Origin: Thalia democratica
Taxonomy: Eukaryota
NCBI GenBank assembly: GCA_965202585.1
Contig: OZ241833.1
Location: 29,078,001-29,142,000, forward strand
Direction: 5' to 3'
Length of the DNA stretch: 64,000 bases
The notes under the pieces are model-generated. The model saw only the letters and a list, made by a program, of their open reading frames with translations. It was not told the origin of the DNA and did no database searches. Shown here one piece after another: positions 1 through 14,000 of the stretch (position 1 is its first letter; each line of letters opens with the position of its first letter). The position numbers and the translations under genes are program-made.

Positions 1-768
1 GAGAGTTTATTTTAAAAGAATCATAAACATTACAAGCAAAGAAAATAAACTTTTATAAGTTGAGCAACTTAAGAAATATAAACTATTTTTGAAGAAAATC
101 ACAACAAAACGTGTTTAAGTGTTTAGAAGAAAATAAAACGACACGTATATAAACTCAAGTGGCGCCTTTTGTAATAACAACAATAAAAAATCGCTTTTTG
201 TAACAAAAAATAATTTTTTTAACATTACAAAAAATTTTCCATCAGTCAGCAATTTTTTTATTGGTTTAAAAATGGGGTGAGGGCATTCGAATTATAATTA
301 AAAACCGTTTAAAAATAAACGAGTTATATTAAGAAGTTTTGAAGAGTTATATTTCAATATTATTTTATATTAAGATGTTTTTCTAAACAACTTTTAACTA
401 AGCTACTTATTAAACGCTTTAGATAACTTAAATAGAGATAACTTAAATAGAGTTATAAATTGTTTAACGTCATTACTGCGATATATAATGCATGTAAAAA
501 ACAGCTGCTTAATTAATAAATAAATCATAAGCTAAGAAACAAATTATTTAAAAAAGCTCTTTTTGTTTAAGATTACTTCCACTTATTGATAAAATTCTTA
601 CAAACTTTTATGACGACATAAAATGCTTACAGTTTGAATACTGCTGTTAAACGAAATCGTTGAAAATATGTTTAATAAAAAATTAAAATGTAATATTTAA
701 ATACAAATAAATGTTTCTGTTCTATCAGAACAAATTAATCTTAATTTAATATTAAATACAAAACAAAC

Positions 769-3700
769 TTTTTCAGCTTCATCCCACATGGATATTTCAC
801 CCATGTATTTTTCGGGTCTGGTAGAAAGGAACAGCTTGAACGTGAAACCGAAAACCTTGTAAACCGTCTCAAGGAAGTCCAAACCTCCTTTGACTTCCTG
901 CAAATAAATCAACTCTTTAGTGCCAAATTGAATGCCAACTTCGTTTTTATGAAGCTTTAATGTGTTCGGTAGTGAGAAAGCTGTATTTTACATATCTTAT
1001 TTTAGATAGTGCATATAAATTAGAAACAACAAGCTTTATTTGTGATACATAATCTGTTGATTCCATTTTTAGCATTGTTATTCTGGATTTATAACGTTCA
1101 GTACTTATAACTAAATGAGCAAACAATTATTTACAACCATTTGATTTTCTTTCTAAGGTCCGTTAATAAAAACAAACGTATAGAGATAACTTAGCAATTA
1201 ATTTAAAATTAATTTTTTCTTCACCTGTTTAATTTGCGACTGCATGCAGAAAATGTGGGCATCGTCCTGTTGGAACCTTCTGACCCTTGTCAGTCCAGTC
1301 AGCGCTCCGCTCGCCTCGTTTCTGTGCAATACACCGAAATCAGCCATCCGTAACGGCAATTCTCTCCACGAACGGCTGCGGTGGCGGAACATCAAACTGT
1401 ATATCAAATATAATTGGTAAGTGTAATCAATTAATATGTTAGTTTTGTTATTAAAATCATGTGACAAAATCATATATATTACATATGATCAATAGCTAGA
1501 ATCAATAATTATGCTAGTTTTGTCTTCAAAAGGCCGTGGAAATATTTAAAAATTAGTCAGTTAAACAACATGTTCTATATACCGAATACTCTTTTTATAC
1601 TAACCTGATACTAAAAAAAATTACAAGTTAAAACTGTCTCGTGTCAACTTGCAATTCTGGTATAACAACTCATGCCTGAGATGTTTTCAAGTTGATGCTG
1701 TGTATTTAGTATACTTATCGCCTTGTAAACCTTACTGAATGTAAAGCAAATCATTAAGTTAAAAACGAGTTGCTAGTATGGATATAAACTTAAATAGTTT
1801 CTTGACCATTGACAATTAAACATTGATAACTTTGTACAACCATAGAAATGAAAAAATGTTTAATTGTTTTAAACAGTAGCATAAATATGAGTAAAAACTG
1901 TGTGAAAGTGCAAAGTAGTTTTTTACTTTTTTCGCACAAATTAAAACAAACACAACATGATATAAGGATGAATAAAAAGTTTATAAACAAAATGAATACC
2001 AATGGCCAGGACAATTCATGGGCTTGAGAGCGAAGACTTGTTTTTCAATGGTGGTACGGAACATGTTTTCCTCATAATGCTGCCAGTGACCGGATGTTTT
2101 CCACAGATCGCTGTTGTAAATATTAGGAGTGATCACTTCCTGAAATCCGCGTTTCCTGTACTCCTCCTGAATGAATTATTGAAAAACTGTGTTAATGTTA
2201 TATAAAAAACTGTCATTTAAAAACATAAAAACTTAGCCATATAAACGTTTTACTAATTTCTTAAAGTTTATTTAAAATGTAGCAGAAACATTTTAATTTT
2301 ATCACACAAAACATATTTTATTTCTAAAAAAACCTATCCTAGCAACTTTTTAGAAACTCCAGTTTACCAACAACCCACCCTTATAAAAGATTCAAGCTGG
2401 TGGTAGATGAACTGTCCCTTGGGCAAGAAGAAGCAGCTTCCAGGTGACAGTTCGTGGAAGAAGAACAGTTCCTGCTCCTTGCCGATCTTCCTGTGATCCC
2501 TCTTTTTCGCCTCCTCCTGAAACTGCATCCACTCCTTAAGGTCCTTTTTGTCGGGGAAGCTGATGCCGTACACTCTCTGCAGAGTCTCCATGTTTTGGTT
2601 GCCTTCCCAGTACGCTGAAGAGTTCTATGCAAAGTTTTTTTTTAACAATGTTTGTCATTACTGAGCATATCTATGCTAGATAAGCAACTGTGCAGCATTT
2701 TCCTACGAAATTAATGGTTATTTAGTTTATCGCTTTATGCGGAATTCAAGCATTGTAAGTTGTTATTACTATTATTTGTAATTTTTTTTTGTCTTGTTTA
2801 AAATGTCTCATACCAAAAAATCTTACGATGAAGTAAAAGCTTATTCAGCTATTTATGCATGAGTTTCAAAAATCATCTTTTGTTCAGTGCAAAATATTAT
2901 TAATAGTTTCTATTTTCATTCTAATTGACAATATGCTTTTAAAAAAGTACCTTGTATGCGAGTTTAAACTAAACAGTACCTTGTAAAGTTTGACAGCTTT
3001 GACTTTTCCAGTGTGCCTGAGATGAGGACCCCTGCAAAGATCAATCAAGGATCCACATCTGTAGACAGTCGTTGTTGGCGTCTTAACACGTTCGTTCAAC
3101 AGGCGCAACTGTGAATTGAATGGGTTTGAAAATTATGAACAATTTTCAAAAAAAAAAATCTATTTTAATAATAAAACAAGCTTGTGAACTTTAAATTTAC
3201 ATTTAAAGTAGACTATTTTTTTAGCAATGAAAAAAAAATCCAAAATAAGAAAGAAAATTTATGACGAAGATAATTTAAAGCACCTTGAACTTGTTGTACT
3301 TGAACATTTCTTTGAGCGTCTCAACTTTAATTTCCAGCCTTTCAAAAGGCTGCTTTTCCGCAGCAATTTTCTTTATCACCTTTTCAAGTTCTGGAAAGTG
3401 CTTGTCAGAAACTTGCCTGTTACATGTACACAATACACATTTATTAAGTAACTTTCTTCATTTTATTTTTACCTACAACATAATTGCAAAATTGTTTTCA
3501 AAAAACAAGTTCGTTAGCTTCAGATAAGCATATTTAGGATCGTAAAAACTAATAAAAGTTGTGTATGAAATCAGAAGAGGTTACACTTACTCATTTATTA
3601 GCTTGAGTCAAAAGAAAAAAACTGGCTGAAAAATATATTTTTCTATAAAATTTTAAGTTATGCATTAATATTTAAACTGACTGATTTTCCATGTGCATGT

Positions 3701-6700
3701 CATAGTAGAATCCGTTGTCAACTGGTGGTCCGTAGCACAACTCCCCTCCATAAACTCTTTCGAGAGCTTCACCCAAAACATGAGCCGTTGAATGCCAGTA
3801 CACGTACTGTGTTAAATTTTTCATTTATTTATAATATAAAAAGAATAAATGCACTAGTCACTATAACTGCAATTTATCTTCAGAGTTTTAGTTTAATTTA
3901 ATAAAAAAATATTTGTCATAAAAATGTTTACTTATTTAAATAAGAATTACAAACCTGAGCATCACTGTTGATGACTTTGTTACCATCTTTGTCTTTACCC
4001 TTGAAAGTGATCAGCTCCAGAGATGAATCTTCCTCGAAAGGCCTGTCCAAATCCCACATTTTTCCATTGACTTTTGCCACTACGGCGTTGTTTGCAAGAC
4101 TTTTGCTGTATGAGTTTAAAAAATAGTTATGACTACAGAAATATATCAAGTTTGTATTTCTAAACTAAAAATCAGAGAACAGAAGTAACTATAAATAATA
4201 CCTAAAATATCAGAACTTCAATAATTTTGCTTCTATTGTTAAATTGATATTATTAAACACTGTAGTTTTTGGTTTTTCATATTAATTTTTGATACTTTAG
4301 AATAAAATTTATAAATTTTAAAGGGTGTTTACAAAAATAGTTAAATTCATATTCAAGGATATTCATAAAAAATTAATATCTAACCTAATATCTTCAGCGA
4401 TGCTAATTGGTGAGGTGATCCACGATTTGCCCTCGATTTCTTTTCCATCAGGTAGCGTGACTTTGATAGGCTTGGAGTCTTCCTGTTTTTCTGTTGAAGA
4501 AAATTTTTCAAAAAACATACTGTTAGTTTAACTATAACACCCCAAATGCACATATTGTTTAAATAACAAACTTAGGAATAAATACAACATGCAACGGTCA
4601 GGGTTGTCAAAGGTTTTTTGCAAATTTATTCCAGGTTTTTATAAATTAAGTTGTAGTATAATATAAAACTTAACTTAATTAAAAATTTGTCTTTAATAGT
4701 ATAACAGCATACTGTTAGACACTGTAAAGCTACTTTATATGTGTTTTTAATGAAAAAAATAAATGATACACATTTTTTTTATTCTTATGACAGACTTTTA
4801 TTAACTTATCTGAATTTTACTACTTAACATATAAAATAATTTAAAACTCAAGGTTTTTTTAGTAATTTTTGCTTGAAATTTAGTTTTTTTTTCAAAATTT
4901 CTCAAATTTTAGATTTTTTTTACATAAAATATCAAATTCCAGGTTTTTCTAGAACTTCAAGTTTTTTGGCAACCCTGAACAATTCAAAAAATATTCTTAC
5001 TTTTCATGATCCTGTCAGACTCTTCTTTCAATTTCAAATAAATTTCTTCCCTGTCATCAATGTATTTCGGGCGTGGGTTGAGTTCTCTTGCCCCTCCTTC
5101 CGATTTCTTGCTTACTTCCGATGCAGCTGTTCAATGTTCTACTTTTATACAACTAATATTATAAATTAAATGTTAAAAAAGTATAACATACAAAATCATA
5201 CAGTGTGGTTACGATGTATTATGGATTAAAGAAATTAAAATCTAGTGTTTTTAAATGCCCCTTGGTCTTACAAAAAATTTAACAATAAATATTTCCTCTA
5301 AAGTCCTGTATTACTTACAAAATACAAATTTAAAAGTGGATGCAACACCTAAAAAATGGTAAACCATATAAAAGCATGTAGTCAGCATAAACCGAACTTT
5401 TGGTGCAAACTTAATTTAACAATAACAATCAGCAAATTTTAAATACATTATTTTTTATTTTTACTGCTTCACCAGTTAGAGCACTATGTAATGGAAGAGT
5501 TGATTATCAGTATAATACAAGTCACTATTTATAAGTTGAATTGTAAATTATTTAGAATGTAGATGTTTTTTTTACCTTTCTTGTCCTTCTTTTGTGACTG
5601 TTTCATTTTAGCCTGAACGTCCTTAATCTGTGCTGAGGCCATCTTCTGCGTGACTTCTTCCATTTTTGCTTTTGTCTAGCAATTAATTAGAATATTACTT
5701 AAGAAAACACTCTGTTAGTGAAAGCAAAGTGGTGACTATGATTGCAAGCACACAAAAATGAAGTTCATGTTAGTAAAGTTTAGTGTGTGGTCACTCCACT
5801 GTATTAAAATCATCTGTTGAATCTACTGACTAATTATCTAGTTTAGAAGCTTTTAAAAATTTATATGATAAGCAATGCTCTAAATTTTGGTTAGACGACC
5901 TGATAAATAGAAAAACCTTTCAGTCAATAAACTTCTAAATATAACAAAATATTTATAGTCAAGGATTTATGTTTTAAGTTTGGGTAAAACTTTTGACAAA
6001 GATTTAAAGAGATAAAAGGTAATGTCTGTACTCTGTATAATACTTGTTTCATTACACATATTAATTTAAACCATGCATTATTACACAAACAAAACAGTCA
6101 AGAATTTTTCAAAGATCAAAATCTCAACATGCTTCAAATTTCTAAAACATTAAGTAAAAGTATTTATCTTTGATTGTTATTTCAAAGAATTAATTGAAAA
6201 GTTTATATTTGACAACAACTTAAAAAACTTCAAAATTTTCACCTGTTTAAACCTTTGAGTATAGACGTTCTGCAATAAAGGCCTATTAAATTTTATAAAC
6301 TTTTTAAACATAGCACCTAAAGAAACAACTTTTTTAAATTTCAATATAAAAATTATATTAAAATTCAAACCAATAGAATGCAAAACACAAGTATAATGAT
6401 TAAAGACAAAAATAATATATAAATAAATATCACCAGCGCTAAGTGTGATAAACAAACATACTATTTGCTTATAAAGTGTATTCATTTCACATAACTTCTT
6501 GTGTCTCAAGTAGACAATATAGCATATATGGTTACTATTATTACTTTTTAAAAATATTTTTTAATTTAAGCTTTCTGTTTCACTAAAAAGGTGCAGTAAC
6601 ATAGCTTTAAATACTAACTACCACAATTAAACGAATAATTTAGATATGTTATACTAAAATATCAGTTATTATTTTATTAAGTACTGTTTTTTTTTAATAT

Positions 6701-9700
6701 TGCTTAACCTACTTTTTCTTAAAAAGTTCCTTCTTATTATATAAGAACCTCAAAATAAGTTCTAATATTTAATTTTAACTTTGAAGATAATATTTAAAAA
6801 AAATTATAAAACGGATCTAAGTTTAAGTTTTGATAGTTCCTTTTCATAAAACTTTTGCATTAAAACTTTAAAATGACTGATGATTACATCAAATTTTATA
6901 GAATAATTTAAAGTTACTACTCTGTAGCAACAAAAATGTGATTAAAATTATTCAAATTTGACAGATGACTAGTATCTAATAATCTAATGAAGTTTTAGTG
7001 AACAAACTTTCGATAGGGTTACTAATGATTAATAATCATCAGGGATTGGTTAGCTTGTCTGTTAAAAACAATTACAAATTTAGTATCAAAATATCAAAGA
7101 CAAAAAAGGCTTATGTTATCTTTTTATCATAAAAACTAAAGATTCTCAAGTTTAGATAGTTGATATAACTATAAAAATACAAAGCCAAACTTTTTTGATT
7201 TAACAAAAACCTAAAATTTTACAAGGCTGATATTAATTAATTATCAAACAACATGTTGCATTTCGAAATTTATAAAATGAATGTATATTAAATCATAAAT
7301 TGTAGTTTTTTTCTTTGCTGTCACACCCTTTTTACTTCATAGCAAAATTTTAGATATAAGGGGCCAAAGTTGGTAAATCCAATAGTTCTCTTATGGATAA
7401 AGCAAACTAAAAACATGAAGAAAATTAAACTAAAATATTTTTCAATGTTTAACTGATAGTTCTTTAAATGTTTTTTTAATTTTTCTCAAAATAAAACTTT
7501 TTCATTTTATAATTTCAAGATGAGAGATTCTAAGTTCTTTTTAATAAATATTTATGGAGAGTTTGAAACAAAAAACTCACTCAAAAAACTAAAAAGAAGA
7601 TATCAATTAGGGACCTTATCAATTTAAAAAAAAAAAACACTAATAAAAATTTGCATACTTTTGGTATTGAAAACTATTGTAGGAGTGACTGTATCTTAAA
7701 AATATATTATTATGTTTAAATTAAATACTTACAGCTCAACTTAAGCCCTCATGTAAAAGATAATATCAGTTTACTATTAAAGCTGTGTTAGCATGCTGTT
7801 TATTAACTAATGATTTCAGAAATATTGCAATAAACAAAATAACACTTGGAATAAAAATGCAGAAACCATTTTGTATTATAAATTTATTGACTTGGTCTAA
7901 ATAAAAATTGTTTTAATTACCTTAACTAAGGATGCTCAGAGACTTAAAACACATTTAACTTTTTTTAATATTAATTGGATTTAATAAACTTTATGTTTTT
8001 TTTTCAATTTAATACAAAAGTAAATTGTATTATATAATGATATGTTTATTTTTAATAAAAAAACCTTCCCTAATTTGATTTTAGCAATTAAATTTTAGGT
8101 TACCACTTATTGAAGCAAAACAAGTTTTGAAAGAACTAAAATCAAGCTGAGTTTATTAGAATTATTTTATGTACTAAGAGCAAAATATCGAAAAAAATGT
8201 ATACTACTGTTATTAAACTTAACAAAAAATACCTAACAATATTATTGCAATAACAAAAGAACTTAATATTTAAATTTTGAAATAATTTTTAAGAAAAAAA
8301 GGTCTCTTAAGGAGAAAATATAGCCTAAGATTTACAGAAATATTAAAACTAGTCTGAGTTTTGCAAAAGTTGTCAAACAAGCCTGAATAACCAAAGTGTA
8401 TAGCAACCTGTTTAGATGTAATGTTTAATTTTATCTAGTTCAAAATTATCAGAAATGTTGTTTAATACAAACTTGTTAGTACTTTTTTAGTAATTTAAAA
8501 GCTCCCAAGGTTCTAAAATAAAGTTTTTAAGCTTAAAAATTCCAAACAAACAAAGATTCATTAGCTTTTTTTTCAGACTAAAGAAGGTAAGTTATCAATG
8601 ACCGAAAACCATGCACAGTACTCATTACATATATATATATTTATATATAAAAGACTAATTGTAAATTTCAACCATCTTGATAATAAAAATAATTGTATGC
8701 ATAAATTTTTAACATTTTTATCTATTGCACCTCTTATACTTTTACAGAATTGCCACTTACTTTATTAAATTCATAAGCTTTTTAATTAACTCTATTTGTC
8801 AATTTCTGAAGTAATCTGTTAGTTAAACTAACACTAAACCAAACTATTGATTTTGTTTACAACATTTTATTAAATTTCAAAGGAAATTGTTTCAGGTAAA
8901 CACTACTATTTTTACACTTTTAATTCATAATACAAGACAATAAAAGTCTTACTAATATTTACATGATTAAATTAACACTGTTTTCTTACTCTGACAATAC
9001 AAATTTATTAAATTATGTTACATCAAATACATGGTAAACCTTATTTAACAATTCATTAAACTTTAGTTAAAGTTAAACGAGTGAATCTTTTAAAGCAGGG
9101 AAGTAGGTTGAACTAGCTTGCAGCATTTTAATATTTTTGATGTATTGCTACTTTGTAATATTTTTTTGAAGGTATTTATTTTAAAAAAAGTTAAAAACAA
9201 CATCCTTTTAAACAAAAAATATAAATCAAAGTTAATACTTAATTTAAATAAACTGCAGGTTTGTTCAAGATAGATCTTTGATTTAGCCTAAAAAATATTT
9301 CTTGAAATTTGTTTTATTTAAATTGCTGTAAGCTTTATAAATTGTTCTCGACTTCATCATTTGCATCATTACAAAGTTTTAAATGAAAACAGTAAAGTTA
9401 ATATTAAAAAGAAATAAAATGACTTAAATGCAAACTTTTTAAAGTTTAAATTCAACTATCTATAAGAATTGTCTGATTAATACAAAATTAAATGGCTGTT
9501 AAAGAAACGTACTTCTTTTTAGGATTTGTGGCAACCCTATTTAAATTACTACTGATAAAATGACAAAACAAAACTTTCAACTGAATTTCAAAGTCAAGAA
9601 TTATGTAAAACAGTGCTTGAAAAAACTTACAGGCTTGCAACTTTTTTTTTCTTCTTCTACTGCTCTACTCAAATGCAAAGCCTGATACTTTAGCTTGTCA

Positions 9701-9858
9701 TTTTGATTTTCCAAATATTTTATATCCTCATTTTTTTGATCTTCATTAAGACAGCAATCATTTTGTTGCAAAAGAGAAACACTCTGCATAAGTTGGTCTG
9801 CCTGATTACATTGATTTTCAAAAGTTATTGAAAGATCTTTGAGATTAGAGCCATCCAT
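769..9858 (-). CDS. TARS1: Cytosolic threonyl-tRNA synthetase, multi-exon, 3' part outside the window
   Basis: GT-AG exons with continuous phase: 9631-9858, 5576-5675, 5001-5126, 4385-4490, 3955-4105, 3682-3806, 3284-3416, 2980-3108, 2379-2624, 2000-2166, 1225-1396, 769-897. The translation has the TGS domain ([18 protein letters not shown]...[17 protein letters not shown]), editing domain ([21 protein letters not shown]), [65 protein letters not shown] and [10 protein letters not shown]. Joining exon 1 (9631-9858) is less certain than the core. Confidence 0.97.
4599..4977. mobile_element. Non-autonomous DNA transposon (MITE) with CAGGGTTG(T/C)CAA...TTGGCAACCCTG termini, in ThrRS intron 3
   Basis: Terminal inverted repeats and internal CCAGGTTTTT motifs. 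The body is shared in inverted orientation with ~27050-27436 (aaagctactttatatgtgtttttaat vs attaaaagcacatttaaagtagctta). No clean TSD. Confidence 0.65.
9631..9858 (-). CDS. First coding exon of ThrRS: 76-aa coiled-coil/leucine-zipper extension resembling the ArgRS/TARS3 N-terminus
   Basis: ATG at 9856-9858; GTAAGT donor at phase 0 matches the phase-0 acceptor at 5675. Motif CCLNE...[22 protein letters not shown] resembles the recalled human RARS1 stretch CGCL...[22 protein letters not shown]. Confidence 0.75.
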
Positions 9859-10440
9859 GTTCTATTTTTGCTAATACTTATGGTTTTATAACATTAACTA
9901 TTAAAGTGTTATATTAAAAAAATATATATATTGCTAAATATAATTTAGTTTATATTTATCAAAAATTGATCAAGTGTAAGCTCTTTTACTGTATAATTTG
10001 AAAGAACTAGAACAGCCTTGAACAGGGTTGCTATTTTTTGAAGTAAAAGTAGCCTAAGTGAACAGAAAATATCCTGAGTCACTTAATTACTAGCTAGAGT
10101 TTACTAAGTCCCTTGAAATCGAGTTTACATGCCACCAGTACTATCTAATTCTAATTTATGCTAATTTTAAGCTAATTAGACTTGCATGTTTTTGAACAAC
10201 TAAATTATTACTATAAAAAACTTTTGTCATTTAAATTGATAACATGTTAATGTCAGTAATTATAACTTAAATTTTTAATATTAACTGTTATACTTTTTTT
10301 GACTAATTGGGTAGCCTTAAGTCAAAAAAAATCTTTCCTGAACTTCTGAGTGACTTTAACTGTCCTGAGTTTTTTCAAATTCTAAAAAATACTTCTTTTA
10401 ACTTAAAAAAAATCAGGTTGTTTAACATAATTGGTAAAAT

Positions 10441-11015
10441 AATATCAAGGCTGTAGTTTTATGGACATTTAAATTCAAGATTCTCAACACATTCTCATTT
10501 TTTACTTATGTTCATTACCGCACTTTAAAACAGCTGTAATCACATTAGACTACAGGGTTTCCCAAAGTGGGCCAAGTGGCCCCCTAGGGGGCCATGACAG
10601 ATACTCAGGGGGCCAAGAGCAGCAGAGGGGGGCCATGAGCAGTAAAGGAGCCACAGGGGGGGGGGGGGGGGGCATGAGGCCAATGTGTATTTTATATGTT
10701 AGTTTAGAAACTTACACTAGATATTCTTGAGTTGCAGATGAGAGCAAAAAAAAAAGGTCTTTGGTAATTTTTATTGTAGTTTATGAGTAATCTTGGTGAA
10801 GGGGGCCATTTGCAAAAAAGTTTGGGAAACCCTGCGTTAGAGTAATAAAACTCTAGAAATTTGTTTCATGTCCGTAGACCTATAGAATAAGATTTAACTT
10901 TCTATTTTAATAAATAAAATAGTTATGGTACCTCAAAAACCCCTCAAAAAAAAAAGAGTATGTGTTGAGAATCTTGAATTTAAATGTCTGTAAAACTTCA
11001 GCCTGGTAATATAAT
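10441..11015. repeat. ~60-bp imperfect inverted-repeat pair (old MITE) enclosing a younger hAT MITE
   Basis: 10441-10503 (aatatcaaggctgtagttttatggacatttaaattcaagattctcaacaca) is the near reverse complement of ~10955-11015 (tgtgttgagaatcttgaatttaaatgtctgtaaaacttcagcctggtaatat). Confidence 0.6.
10553..10834. mobile_element. hAT (Buster-like) MITE, 282 bp
   Basis: TIRs CAGGGTTTCCCAAA...TTTGGGAAACCCTG. The GC-rich ggccatga/ggcccc interior is shared with 48360-48747 in opposite orientation. Flanks are only an imperfect duplication. Confidence 0.8.
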
Positions 11016-14000
11016 AAGAAATATTGAAACAAAACCACATTCAAAATCCAAAAAAAAACTGGCCTGAGGTTTTCAAAAATCTTAAAACTATCCTGTGTTT
11101 TTCAAACTCATCATATCCTGAAATTTTCATAAATTTTGAAATATGCTGAGTGTGTGGCAACCCTGACTGTAATAATAAGTCATAACTTTATCATTAAAAA
11201 AAAGGGAACTTTTAAGTTCAACAAGCCACTTCTCATAGACCTTTATCAGAGTGTAGTTAGAGTATTGGTACATAATTAATACTAAACAGATGAATTTAAA
11301 TGCTGGATACCAAAAAATAAAAACTATCAATAGTCCACAGACAAATTTTATAAATATATCTGCATTAACTTCAGTGATAGTTGGTTTTTGAGCTAAAGCA
11401 AATTTTTGGTTATGACATCATAAATACTAAGTATCTATTTTAAATTTAAATACTGTGCAATCAAAGTCTTTAAGAGTATACATGTGATCTTTATAATTTA
11501 TTTGTGTAAGAATTTTGTTTTTTATAAGAACTCTACTTCCATCATTAGTACATGCCACAAGGCTTAAAATTTTACATGATAATTTTAATCAACAATAAAA
11601 GATAAAACAAGTTAATTTTTAGAAAATAAATAAAAATTCAAGATAACTGAATCAACTCAATCTCATATAACTTCTAATAAAATCTAGACGGATTTTTACA
11701 AATAATTTAAAAACATTTCGAGTACACAACAAAATTTCCAAGATGGGAATGGACCTTGGTCTTGCTAGATCCTTTTGAAGTTGTGAGAGAACCTAATCAA
11801 AGAGGCCAAATCCCAGTTGTCTGGGTTGGCCTGACTTAGTCATGAGCATTCTAATAACAATTCTTTAATCTGCTATATATAGAAAAAAATTGAAAGTCAT
11901 TTAAGAGTACAAATAAAGTTGATGTAATATTTGTTTTAGTAACTTTATAATGAATTATTTCACATAATTATAGAGAATTTTTTCACTACAACAAAACACA
12001 ATGTTGCATCAGCTTAACTTTCTAAAATGGTGAATAACCATTTTGTACTATTTAGTTCAAGAAAAATGACATACATAGTTTGGTACTAATCAAGAAGAGA
12101 ACAAAATGTATATCAAGTTTTTGAATAGAACTGTGTTTTTACTTTAACTCTTAAAAATATCTTGACCAAGTAAGTATGTGTAAAAAATCCTTTGATTGCT
12201 AAAAAATATTAAGTATGTAACTATTTTACTTAGATGCATCTTTTTGAAATTTACATTAAACTTAAATTTATTTTAAAAATTTAATGTATTTAGACATGTT
12301 AAAAACCTTTAATTTAGACTAACTTTTTTTTTAAGTTTTATTTTTAAAATAATGTTTAAAGTTTGCATACAAACTAATAACTGTTTTTATACCTTGTACG
12401 ACTACAAAATTAACCTGATACGTAATAGGAATGACGTGCAATTTAAATAGAGTTTATACATTGTCTCACGGCATACGAAAGTCCAGGCTCCAGGCTTAGT
12501 CTCTGTACTCTTTAGACTTTAACCGATATTTTTTTAGCTAAATAGAGTACATATATTTTTAATGATTTTACCTTGTGATCACTATAACTTTTAAAACACG
12601 TATTACGCTTGCTTTATTTTACCAATATGTATTTCACTTTACTTTAAATGTTCTTTTTTATATATATTTGTTTTTTAAGTCAGTTCTAGCTAAGTTAGAT
12701 TGTGTTGTTCATATAAAAAATATAATATATATAGGGTTATCAAAAACAAAACATGGTGTTTGTAATTTATTTGCAAACTAATTTTGTTGTCTTAATAATT
12801 TATCCCGACAAAACTTAAATAACCTATGGATTTTATTCTTTACTTCAACATTTAAGAAAAACTATGTTTGTAAATATTTTAGTTTAAAAGTGTACCTAGT
12901 TTTTTTTTTTGTTTTCGTAGTATGTTAAGTGTGTTTTATTGAAAATATTAAACTATAATTAAAGTTTTTATGTTTTAGCACTTTAAATATATAACAAAAA
13001 GAAGTTACGAGATGCAATAAATTAATAAACAAAATGTAGTTTATATTAGTTTTCAAACTTTCAGTAGTACTTTTTGTTTTTGTTTTCATAAACTTATTAG
13101 CTAGAACCTGATTTTTTTATCAATGGCATAAATTACAAGAGTCGACTAAAATAAAAACATTCGTTCAAGATATAGTTTTCAGCTTAAAAAGTATTATAAA
13201 TAAGCTTCGAAAAACCTAAAAGCTCCTAACTTAATGCTTAGAAAATACTATTGTGTTTTTATCTTCTTTTTATCAAATTTTTAAGAATGAAGTTGTATTT
13301 TATTATTATTAATACATTTATCTACCCTCAAAAAATGTTTTTAATACGACCTAAGAAAAACTTGTACTAGGATAATTGGCCTGTTAATTACAAAAGGGAC
13401 CCTAAAACAAACCTAAAAATAAACATAGAATTTTACAAAAGTTGTAAATAAGTGAAACATCTTAACGACTGTACAAAAGTTTTAGAATATAACACTTAAT
13501 TACAATAGCTTTAATACTTAATTTTTATATGAAAAGTTAACTTGAATATTTAAATGAGGTTTTAAGCTTTACTTAAAGGGTAAATTTTAAACTTTGATAA
13601 ATGTCTTTACTTCAACTTAATAACTATGTAAACTATAAAACAACAGCACCTTAATGAATTTTTATTTCACACAGTCTAACTAAACTCTATTAAAATAAGT
13701 TTTACTTCGATCGAAAAAAATAAGTAATAGTTTAAAGAAATGATTTCTAATAAAACGTTTTTAAGTCAGTAAATGATAAATAAGGTATAACTTTTTTTAC
13801 ATAAAATTTTTTTATCAAAAACTACGAAAATTTCAATTTTTTACACAATGTATACACATTAAACTACGAAATAATTAAACATCACAAAAATAAAAACAAT
13901 AATAAATAATATTTTTTTAGTAACTTACGACAAAATATTTAACCTATTTTAAAATAAATCTATCTTTGCCAGAAGCGCTTTTTATAACTAAGAAACTTTA

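Follow-up and report, generated by a model that had tools for sequence, protein, structure and literature searches.

An upstream exon is joined in frame to a ThrRS gene

The locus described here raises the question of whether a threonyl-tRNA synthetase (ThrRS) outside the vertebrates carries an appended leucine zipper and, if so, where that appendage came from and what it might do. Appended domains decide which synthetases enter the multi-synthetase complex, and ThrRS is regarded as a free enzyme. The one zipper-bearing ThrRS that we know of, TARS3, is described as confined to vertebrates and of unclear function. The gene considered here runs on the minus strand of a 64,000-nt stretch of Thalia democratica DNA (assembly GCA_965202585.1, contig OZ241833.1, positions 29,078,001 to 29,142,000; hereafter the window), in AT-rich surroundings (22-30% GC). 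A preliminary description, made from the sequence alone, had proposed that it starts with a distant exon encoding a zipper like that of arginyl-tRNA synthetase (ArgRS; RARS1), and that this one gene might supply both complex-bound and free enzyme.

Exon 1 opens with an ATG at 9858-9856 and reads for 76 codons (Met1-Pro76, positions 9631-9858, minus strand) up to a GTAAGT donor, which places its end at 9631. An AG acceptor stands just before 5675, and from there exon 2 (5576-5675, minus strand) reads on in frame, in phase 0, through TKAK, Met81 (ATG 5663-5661), EEVTQK and Met88 to Met100 and a Lys-rich stretch. To look for RNA across this arrangement, we mapped Logan contigs of four runs onto positions 4300-10100: X8 (organism A), X9 (organism C), the DNA-like run X1, and X4, a marine metatranscriptome. 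A 376-nt X8 contig at depth 177 reads exon 3-exon 2-exon 1 and omits exactly 5127-5575 and 5676-9630; a 213-nt X9 contig has the same two joints. Both skipped segments, intron 2 (449 nt) and intron 1 (3955 nt), are bounded by CT..AC on the plus strand, which is GT..AG on the strand of the gene. The proposed in-frame splice from 9631 to 5675 is thus confirmed by cDNA-type contigs from X8 and X9, in its coordinates as in its translation. X8 also joins 5001 to 4490, connecting exon 1 to the exons of the TGS domain by way of exon 3 (5001-5126, minus strand), a conserved segment of the ThrRS N-extension defined by RNA joints and alignment.

The DNA-like run covers intron 1 evenly. X8 depth there is 0-5 as against 177 in the exons, and an alternative transcription start within this intron, which had also been suggested, was not confirmed. 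Because the X8 contig crosses both junctions unbroken, there is no major alternative join at them in X8. Intron 1 contains no tRNA and no Rfam match (scans of 1-12000 were empty), and no expressed internal exon was seen in it. Depth in X8 is 177 on the exon 1-exon 2 contig and about three times that on the next two exons, with 210+334 on the two alleles of exon 3 and 539 on exon 4; the lower values over exons 1 and 2 may reflect a fall-off of coverage towards the 5' end or further, unassembled 5' ends. An X4 contig likewise covers exon 1 and stays collinear with the genome as far as 9899. With the X8 contig reaching 9872, this sets the minimum extent of the 5' untranslated region (UTR) at 9859-9899 (minus strand).

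Exon 1 also has the properties of coding sequence. Its Met1 lies in a strong context (A at -3, G at +4), with an in-frame TAG 6 nt upstream. Among 520 ATGs outside exons within the window's first 20 kb, only 1.2% start an open reading frame (ORF) of at least 76 codons, and since such an ORF would in addition have to meet its junction in frame, one arising by chance is unlikely. Three environmental contigs (L001, L082 and L083, from Tara and other metagenomes of the European Nucleotide Archive) show 5-7% difference from the window, with indels as well, in intron and flank; in exon 1 they differ at 1-2 of 228 nt, the changes being a synonymous one and D54V (Fisher p 1e-4). Divergence of these copies is about 15-fold lower in exon 1 than in the intron beside it. 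Two single-nucleotide polymorphisms in exon 1 of X1 and X9, at Leu23 and Leu49, are both synonymous. Exon 1 is an expressed, conserved coding exon that adds 76 residues to the protein.

The module is added to a canonical cytosolic enzyme

The sequence of the downstream exons identifies them as those of a canonical eukaryotic cytosolic class II ThrRS. Pfam TGS (PF02824) is found on two exons (E 1e-4 and 1.6e-8), and tblastn with a contiguous 725-aa reference, L002 (Joint Genome Institute (JGI) metagenome contig Ga0247640_1000749, 2573 nt), gave ten exon matches at 44-80% identity per exon, WHSTAH.. among them. Most of the matched exons are 62-80% identical, and the second TGS exon is 43% identical with the read-through past its end included. 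Over the concatenated core, identity is 69% with fish TARS1 and about 66% with arthropod ThrRS. Window residues 81-150 align throughout with the N-extension of canonical animal TARS1, including its start Met, its Lys-rich stretch and the ELNPxPxYI motif; the Lys-rich stretch of exon 2, when aligned with the N-termini of short ThrRS, is common to canonical animal enzymes. Where the gene differs from those TARS1 forms is in the 80 residues upstream, which they lack. L002 itself is a full-length, arthropod-like ThrRS cDNA from a metagenome collection with a presequence-like N-terminus.

The mature mRNA accordingly encodes Met1-Pro76 from exon 1, four apparent former 5' UTR codons, Met81, and then what a normal ThrRS contains: N-extension, TGS, editing and catalytic domains. 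We regard it as probable, with some reserve, that a lineage-restricted, zipper-like 5' exon has been added upstream of the ancestral start of ThrRS and serves as a docking handle. An upstream exon would have come to be spliced in frame onto the old leader of a canonical cytosolic ThrRS gene, and the module it encodes would act in protein-protein docking. The likeliest partners would be AIMP1/p43 and ArgRS, the zipper proteins of the multi-synthetase complex, so that ThrRS would be tethered to the complex much as it is by the TARS3 extension in vertebrates. By analogy with TARS3, docking to the complex is plausible. The module most likely originated separately from that of TARS3, whether an ArgRS-like zipper was captured or a similar one arose by convergence.

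The added residues are predicted to form a zipper-type hairpin

AlphaFold2 with the single sequence predicts helices at residues 4-32 and 39-73 with a loop between them, at a pLDDT (its per-residue confidence) of 90. For helices a and b, respectively, the a/d core reads LLFQALVL and ILNLALVE, next to VCLQILIL and LLNLLLLE in human RARS1. Hydrophobic residues fill 13 of the 16 core positions; the remaining three, Gln, Asn and Glu, occupy the same core positions as in RARS1, so that the predicted core buries a Gln in helix a and an Asn in helix b. TARS3 appears to have both of these buried residues, in an alignment read by eye, not computed. The two predicted heptad-bearing helices are followed by a Lys-rich linker, which is the layout of TARS3 and RARS1. 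A protein language model (ESM Atlas) gave weak neighbours, the nearest named clusters including bZIP and HALZ-type zippers. The added 76 residues are therefore predicted to fold as two amphipathic helices with a leucine-zipper-type core. A mitochondrial presequence was considered and rejected, as the N-terminus is acidic. Against Pfam, exon 1 matched no family at E <=1, and neither PF21972 (Arc1p_N_like) nor WHEP-TRS was found.

The background against which a zipper was first proposed agrees with the literature (PMC6794377, PMC4394549, PMC10200997). Appended zippers bring both ArgRS and TARS3 into the complex (PMC6794377, PMC4394549); the TARS3/TARSL2 zipper is necessary and sufficient for entry, by way of AIMP1 and ArgRS (PMC6794377). 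RARS1 residues 1-72 share with the module a similar length, two helices, the same heptad core with its buried Gln and Asn, an MD start, a Cys-Cys-Leu turn, a KLKY motif and an in-frame Met after the zipper. RARS1 differs in being a class I enzyme, and in having its zipper split over three exons (mammalian genomic fragments P0137-P0145) instead of one as here. In local and profile comparisons the similarity of the two zippers does not reach significance.

We quantified the resemblance with human RARS1 1-73, verified against PDB 4r3z_B, and AIMP1 1-74, verified against 8j9s_A. The human TARS3 1-78 sequence served only as search bait and entered no statistic, the fragments P0123-P0145 taking its place there; it is consistent with every residue number quoted in PMC6794377. 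Globally aligned with RARS1 1-73, residues 1-81 score 46, compared with -6.5 ± 10.5 for shuffles (z 5.0). That score was reached by 0 of 40,000 plain and 0 of 3,000 heptad-preserving shuffles, while reversed sequences score 2 and natural decoy windows at most 22. Exon 1 alone (1-76 against RARS1 1-69) gives z 4.7-5.2, falling to 3.4-4.1 without its KP tail; for TARS3 and RARS1, which are true homologues, z is 6.3. Exon 1 scores z 4.7 against RARS1, 1.6 against AIMP1 and 1.9 against TARS3, suggesting that its end-to-end collinearity is at least selective for RARS1.

These values must be read beside a control. RARS1 1-69 and AIMP1 1-74, partner zippers of multi-synthetase subcomplex II, give a global z of 4.5 and a local z of 4.3; the two zippers may be related, or the values may mark how far shuffle nulls can be trusted with coiled coils. 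Several results weigh against kinship with the known synthetase zippers, and this control is among them: since RARS1 and AIMP1 are not known homologues, a z near 5 is no proof of descent. Against TARS3, exon 1 reaches z <=2.1 and a shuffle p of 0.04 with a hidden Markov model (HMM). HMMs of RARS1 and TARS3 align it in register at only 3-7 bits, with weak shuffle p values of 0.02-0.03 for the combined RARS1+TARS3 model and 0.01 for RARS1 only, and these profiles are shallow, having been built from mammalian fragments only (P0123-P0145). The hhalign probability is 2-5%. BLASTP with RARS1 pairs the two best out of register (E 0.007), the in-register pairing standing at E 8.6. In phmmer searches of the PDB with 76-aa and 88-aa queries RARS1 was not listed, and rootletin and designed coils scored higher. 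Foldseek against the Swiss-Prot part of the AlphaFold database and the PDB returned generic hairpins only, such as ING and designed proteins; this search discriminates poorly because a two-helix hairpin is too simple a fold. Finally, the charged residues that are invariant between RARS1 and TARS3 (R11, E16, E17, E25, R28, R59) are not kept in exon 1.

The proposed resemblance to RARS1 and TARS3 zippers is therefore upheld in its layout, is suggestive at most in the global score with RARS1 (z 3.4-5.2), and fails for TARS3, where similarity is not significant. The outcome of the profile test that had been proposed ranges from borderline to failed. Kinship of exon 1 to ArgRS is suggestive only on these alignments, and true descent from an ArgRS-type zipper would have roughly an even chance.

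A tentative rival has a real chance of being right: exon 1 could encode a generic coiled coil unrelated to the ArgRS and TARS3 zippers, which would strengthen or alter the oligomerisation of ThrRS or bind a partner outside the complex, be it the cytoskeleton, a membrane or a translation factor. In local and profile comparisons exon 1 resembles RARS1 and TARS3 no more than coiled coils do, fold searches match generic hairpins, RARS1 and AIMP1 score almost as well without known homology, and the arthropod long ThrRS forms described below, with a quite different N-module, indicate that ThrRS accepts varied appendages. What speaks against a generic coil is that the collinearity is specific to RARS1 in comparison with AIMP1 and TARS3, that the buried Gln and Asn fall at RARS1 core positions, and that a docking zipper on a ThrRS paralogue has a precedent (PMC6794377).

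Met81 corresponds to the ancestral start codon

When the short cytosolic ThrRS of fish (TARS1), a hemichordate, beetles, a stick insect and psyllids are aligned with the window, their Met1 falls on Met81 (MAEQTVVEKMSELQV being one of the segments aligned here), and their Lys-rich motif matches downstream as well. The preliminary description had likened Met81 to the internal Met of RARS1. The alignment instead identifies it as the ancestral ThrRS start codon and not as a counterpart of RARS1 Met73, so the analogy falls. The exon 2 acceptor lies 12 nt upstream of Met81, whose own context is good (AAAATGG), and the intervening TKAK codons look like a recruited piece of the former 5' UTR. The match of KPTKAKM here to KPTKNM in RARS1 was accordingly rejected as evidence of homology: because TKAKM is encoded by exon 2, with the ancestral start as its last residue, that half of the match could not have been inherited from ArgRS.

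The position of Met81 also bears on whether one gene yields a long and a short isoform, as had been proposed. The exon 1-exon 2-exon 3 form is the only one seen in X8 and X9, with no RNA for a short isoform, although minor transcripts may exist. Between Met1 and Met81 lie seven AUGs, one in frame at codon 24 and six with short ORFs. Given these and the strong Met1, leaky scanning to Met81 was rejected as unlikely. With long-form RNA only, a strong first AUG and seven more before Met81, the isoform pair gained no support. A free short form could start at Met81. If it exists, it would need a transcript of its own, for example by addition of a spliced leader at the exon 2 acceptor, and Met81 would then be the first AUG. 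No spliced-leader-joined RNA at this acceptor was seen.

A more ambitious account would combine these elements. The only cytosolic ThrRS of a non-vertebrate would have received a zipper derived from ArgRS and with it a place in the complex, while the ancestral start, retained 12 nt past the exon 2 acceptor, would still allow a zipper-less enzyme to be made, for instance by spliced-leader trans-splicing; this would amount to a second, convergent origin of a TARS3-like enzyme, from one gene and not two. We consider this combination doubtful.

Very unlikely, in our view, is an account in which exon 1 is in effect a 5' UTR or regulatory exon, the protein starts at Met81, and the upstream ORF is incidental or a translational regulator. 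Met81 is, to be sure, a conserved canonical start in good context; AT-rich DNA does open ORFs of at least 76 codons at the frequency given above, and intron 1 contains a 110-aa ORF started by TTG; and conservation at the nucleotide level could be regulatory. Yet Met1 is the first strong AUG and its ORF crosses the junction in frame and without a stop, a ribosome would have to pass over seven AUGs before reaching Met81, the prediction of a helical hairpin is confident, and the three exon 1 changes in diverged copies comprise two synonymous ones and D54V.

The module is restricted in its distribution

Searched by phmmer among 1.84 billion representatives, exon 1 matched nothing but itself; a word-indexed search returned only copies at 99-100%, and a scan of JGI metagenomes gave nothing relevant. 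On a canonical ThrRS, exon 1 is thus a real, lineage-restricted, coiled-coil module. The ThrRS relatives compared were the top 120, mostly from arthropods and including no TARS3, a sample whose coverage of invertebrates is mainly arthropod.

Arthropod ThrRS gene models fall into a series of about 715 aa, with presequence-like or MGDNVV.. starts, and one of about 790-807 aa. The long forms (P0011, P0043, P0067, P0091, P0104, P0119 and others) carry an N-module of the Arc1p_N_like/GST-C type, resembling that of eEF1B, and PF21972 was matched by seven of the ten tested (19-28 bits). By means of alternative first exons, the same arthropod genes, as annotated, also yield short cytosolic and presequence-bearing forms. 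We did not find this N-module described in the literature consulted on ThrRS appendages. The arthropod long forms are like the gene described here in that an upstream first exon adds an N-module of about 80 aa to a canonical ThrRS, and modules of their class serve elsewhere in the assembly of synthetase and elongation-factor complexes. They differ in the fold family (PF21972), and no alternative first exons were seen here.

TARS3 offers the closer parallel: its 5' exon encodes a two-helix leucine zipper of about 75 aa, and a Lys-rich linker then leads to the conserved N-region of ThrRS. The one spliced TARS3 fragment seen (P0135) has no Met at the corresponding point; in the present gene the zipper is succeeded by the ancestral Met and by a complete canonical N-extension. 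The TARS3 gene is a duplicate specific to vertebrates (PMC10200997), and its zipper is treated as a new vertebrate acquisition similar only to that of ArgRS (PMC6794377, PMC10200997). For ArgRS itself, a leucine-rich extension has been reported in animals ranging from nematodes to humans (PMC4394549). The least probable account is that ThrRS carried a RARS1-like extension even before the origin of vertebrates, and that TARS3 kept it while TARS1 and most invertebrates lost it, for although the order of zipper exon, Lys-rich exon and ThrRS N-extension resembles that of TARS3 (fragments P0123-P0135) and the ArgRS zipper is itself old, the sampled fish TARS1, hemichordate and arthropod short forms start at the Met81 equivalent, nothing like exon 1 was found among the representatives searched, the similarity to TARS3 is not significant, and TARS3 is placed as a vertebrate duplication.

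The expressed, conserved, zipper-like exon sits on a canonical ThrRS of a distant marine animal. Together with the arthropod modules, it suggests that upstream exons have repeatedly supplied ThrRS with docking handles, and it provides a natural case for comparing what is gained by tethering ThrRS. It likewise illustrates cleanly how a new coding exon is grafted onto an old start codon. Should the relationship to ArgRS be true, it would represent exon-level exchange of assembly modules between synthetases.

Other features of the locus

The rest of the gene, again on the minus strand, continues from exon 3 across intron 3 (4491-5000), bounded by the joint of 4490 to 5001 in X8, to exon 4 (4385-4490), which holds the start of the TGS domain. 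Exon 4 is marked by the Pfam TGS match, an RNA joint and a loose end at 4385 that continues into exon 5. Eight more ThrRS exons were found at 769-4107 by tblastn with L002, at about 3973-4107, 3681-3809, 3281-3421, 2965-3111, 2379-2624, 1996-2175, 1225-1401 and 769-900; these boundaries come from tblastn, not RNA, and are approximate. Between them they encode the remainder of TGS, an editing domain in which the HxxxH motif is present, and class II motif 2. Beyond the exon at 769-900 the gene leaves the start of the window, with motif 3 and the anticodon-binding domain lying outside.

Intron 3 contains a very high-copy repeat at about 4688-5000, with a word depth in X1 of about 40,000 compared with about 200 in neighbouring bins, and numerous rearranged joints and loose ends were found at this repeat in the same DNA-like run. 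Within the leader covered by X4, a two-codon upstream ORF (ATG TTA TAA, 9894-9886, minus strand) lies 36 nt upstream of Met1. About 0.7 kb upstream of exon 1, at 10540-10683 (minus strand), a short GC-rich, proline-rich ORF stands out in the AT-rich DNA and may be a piece of a neighbouring gene or of a repeat.

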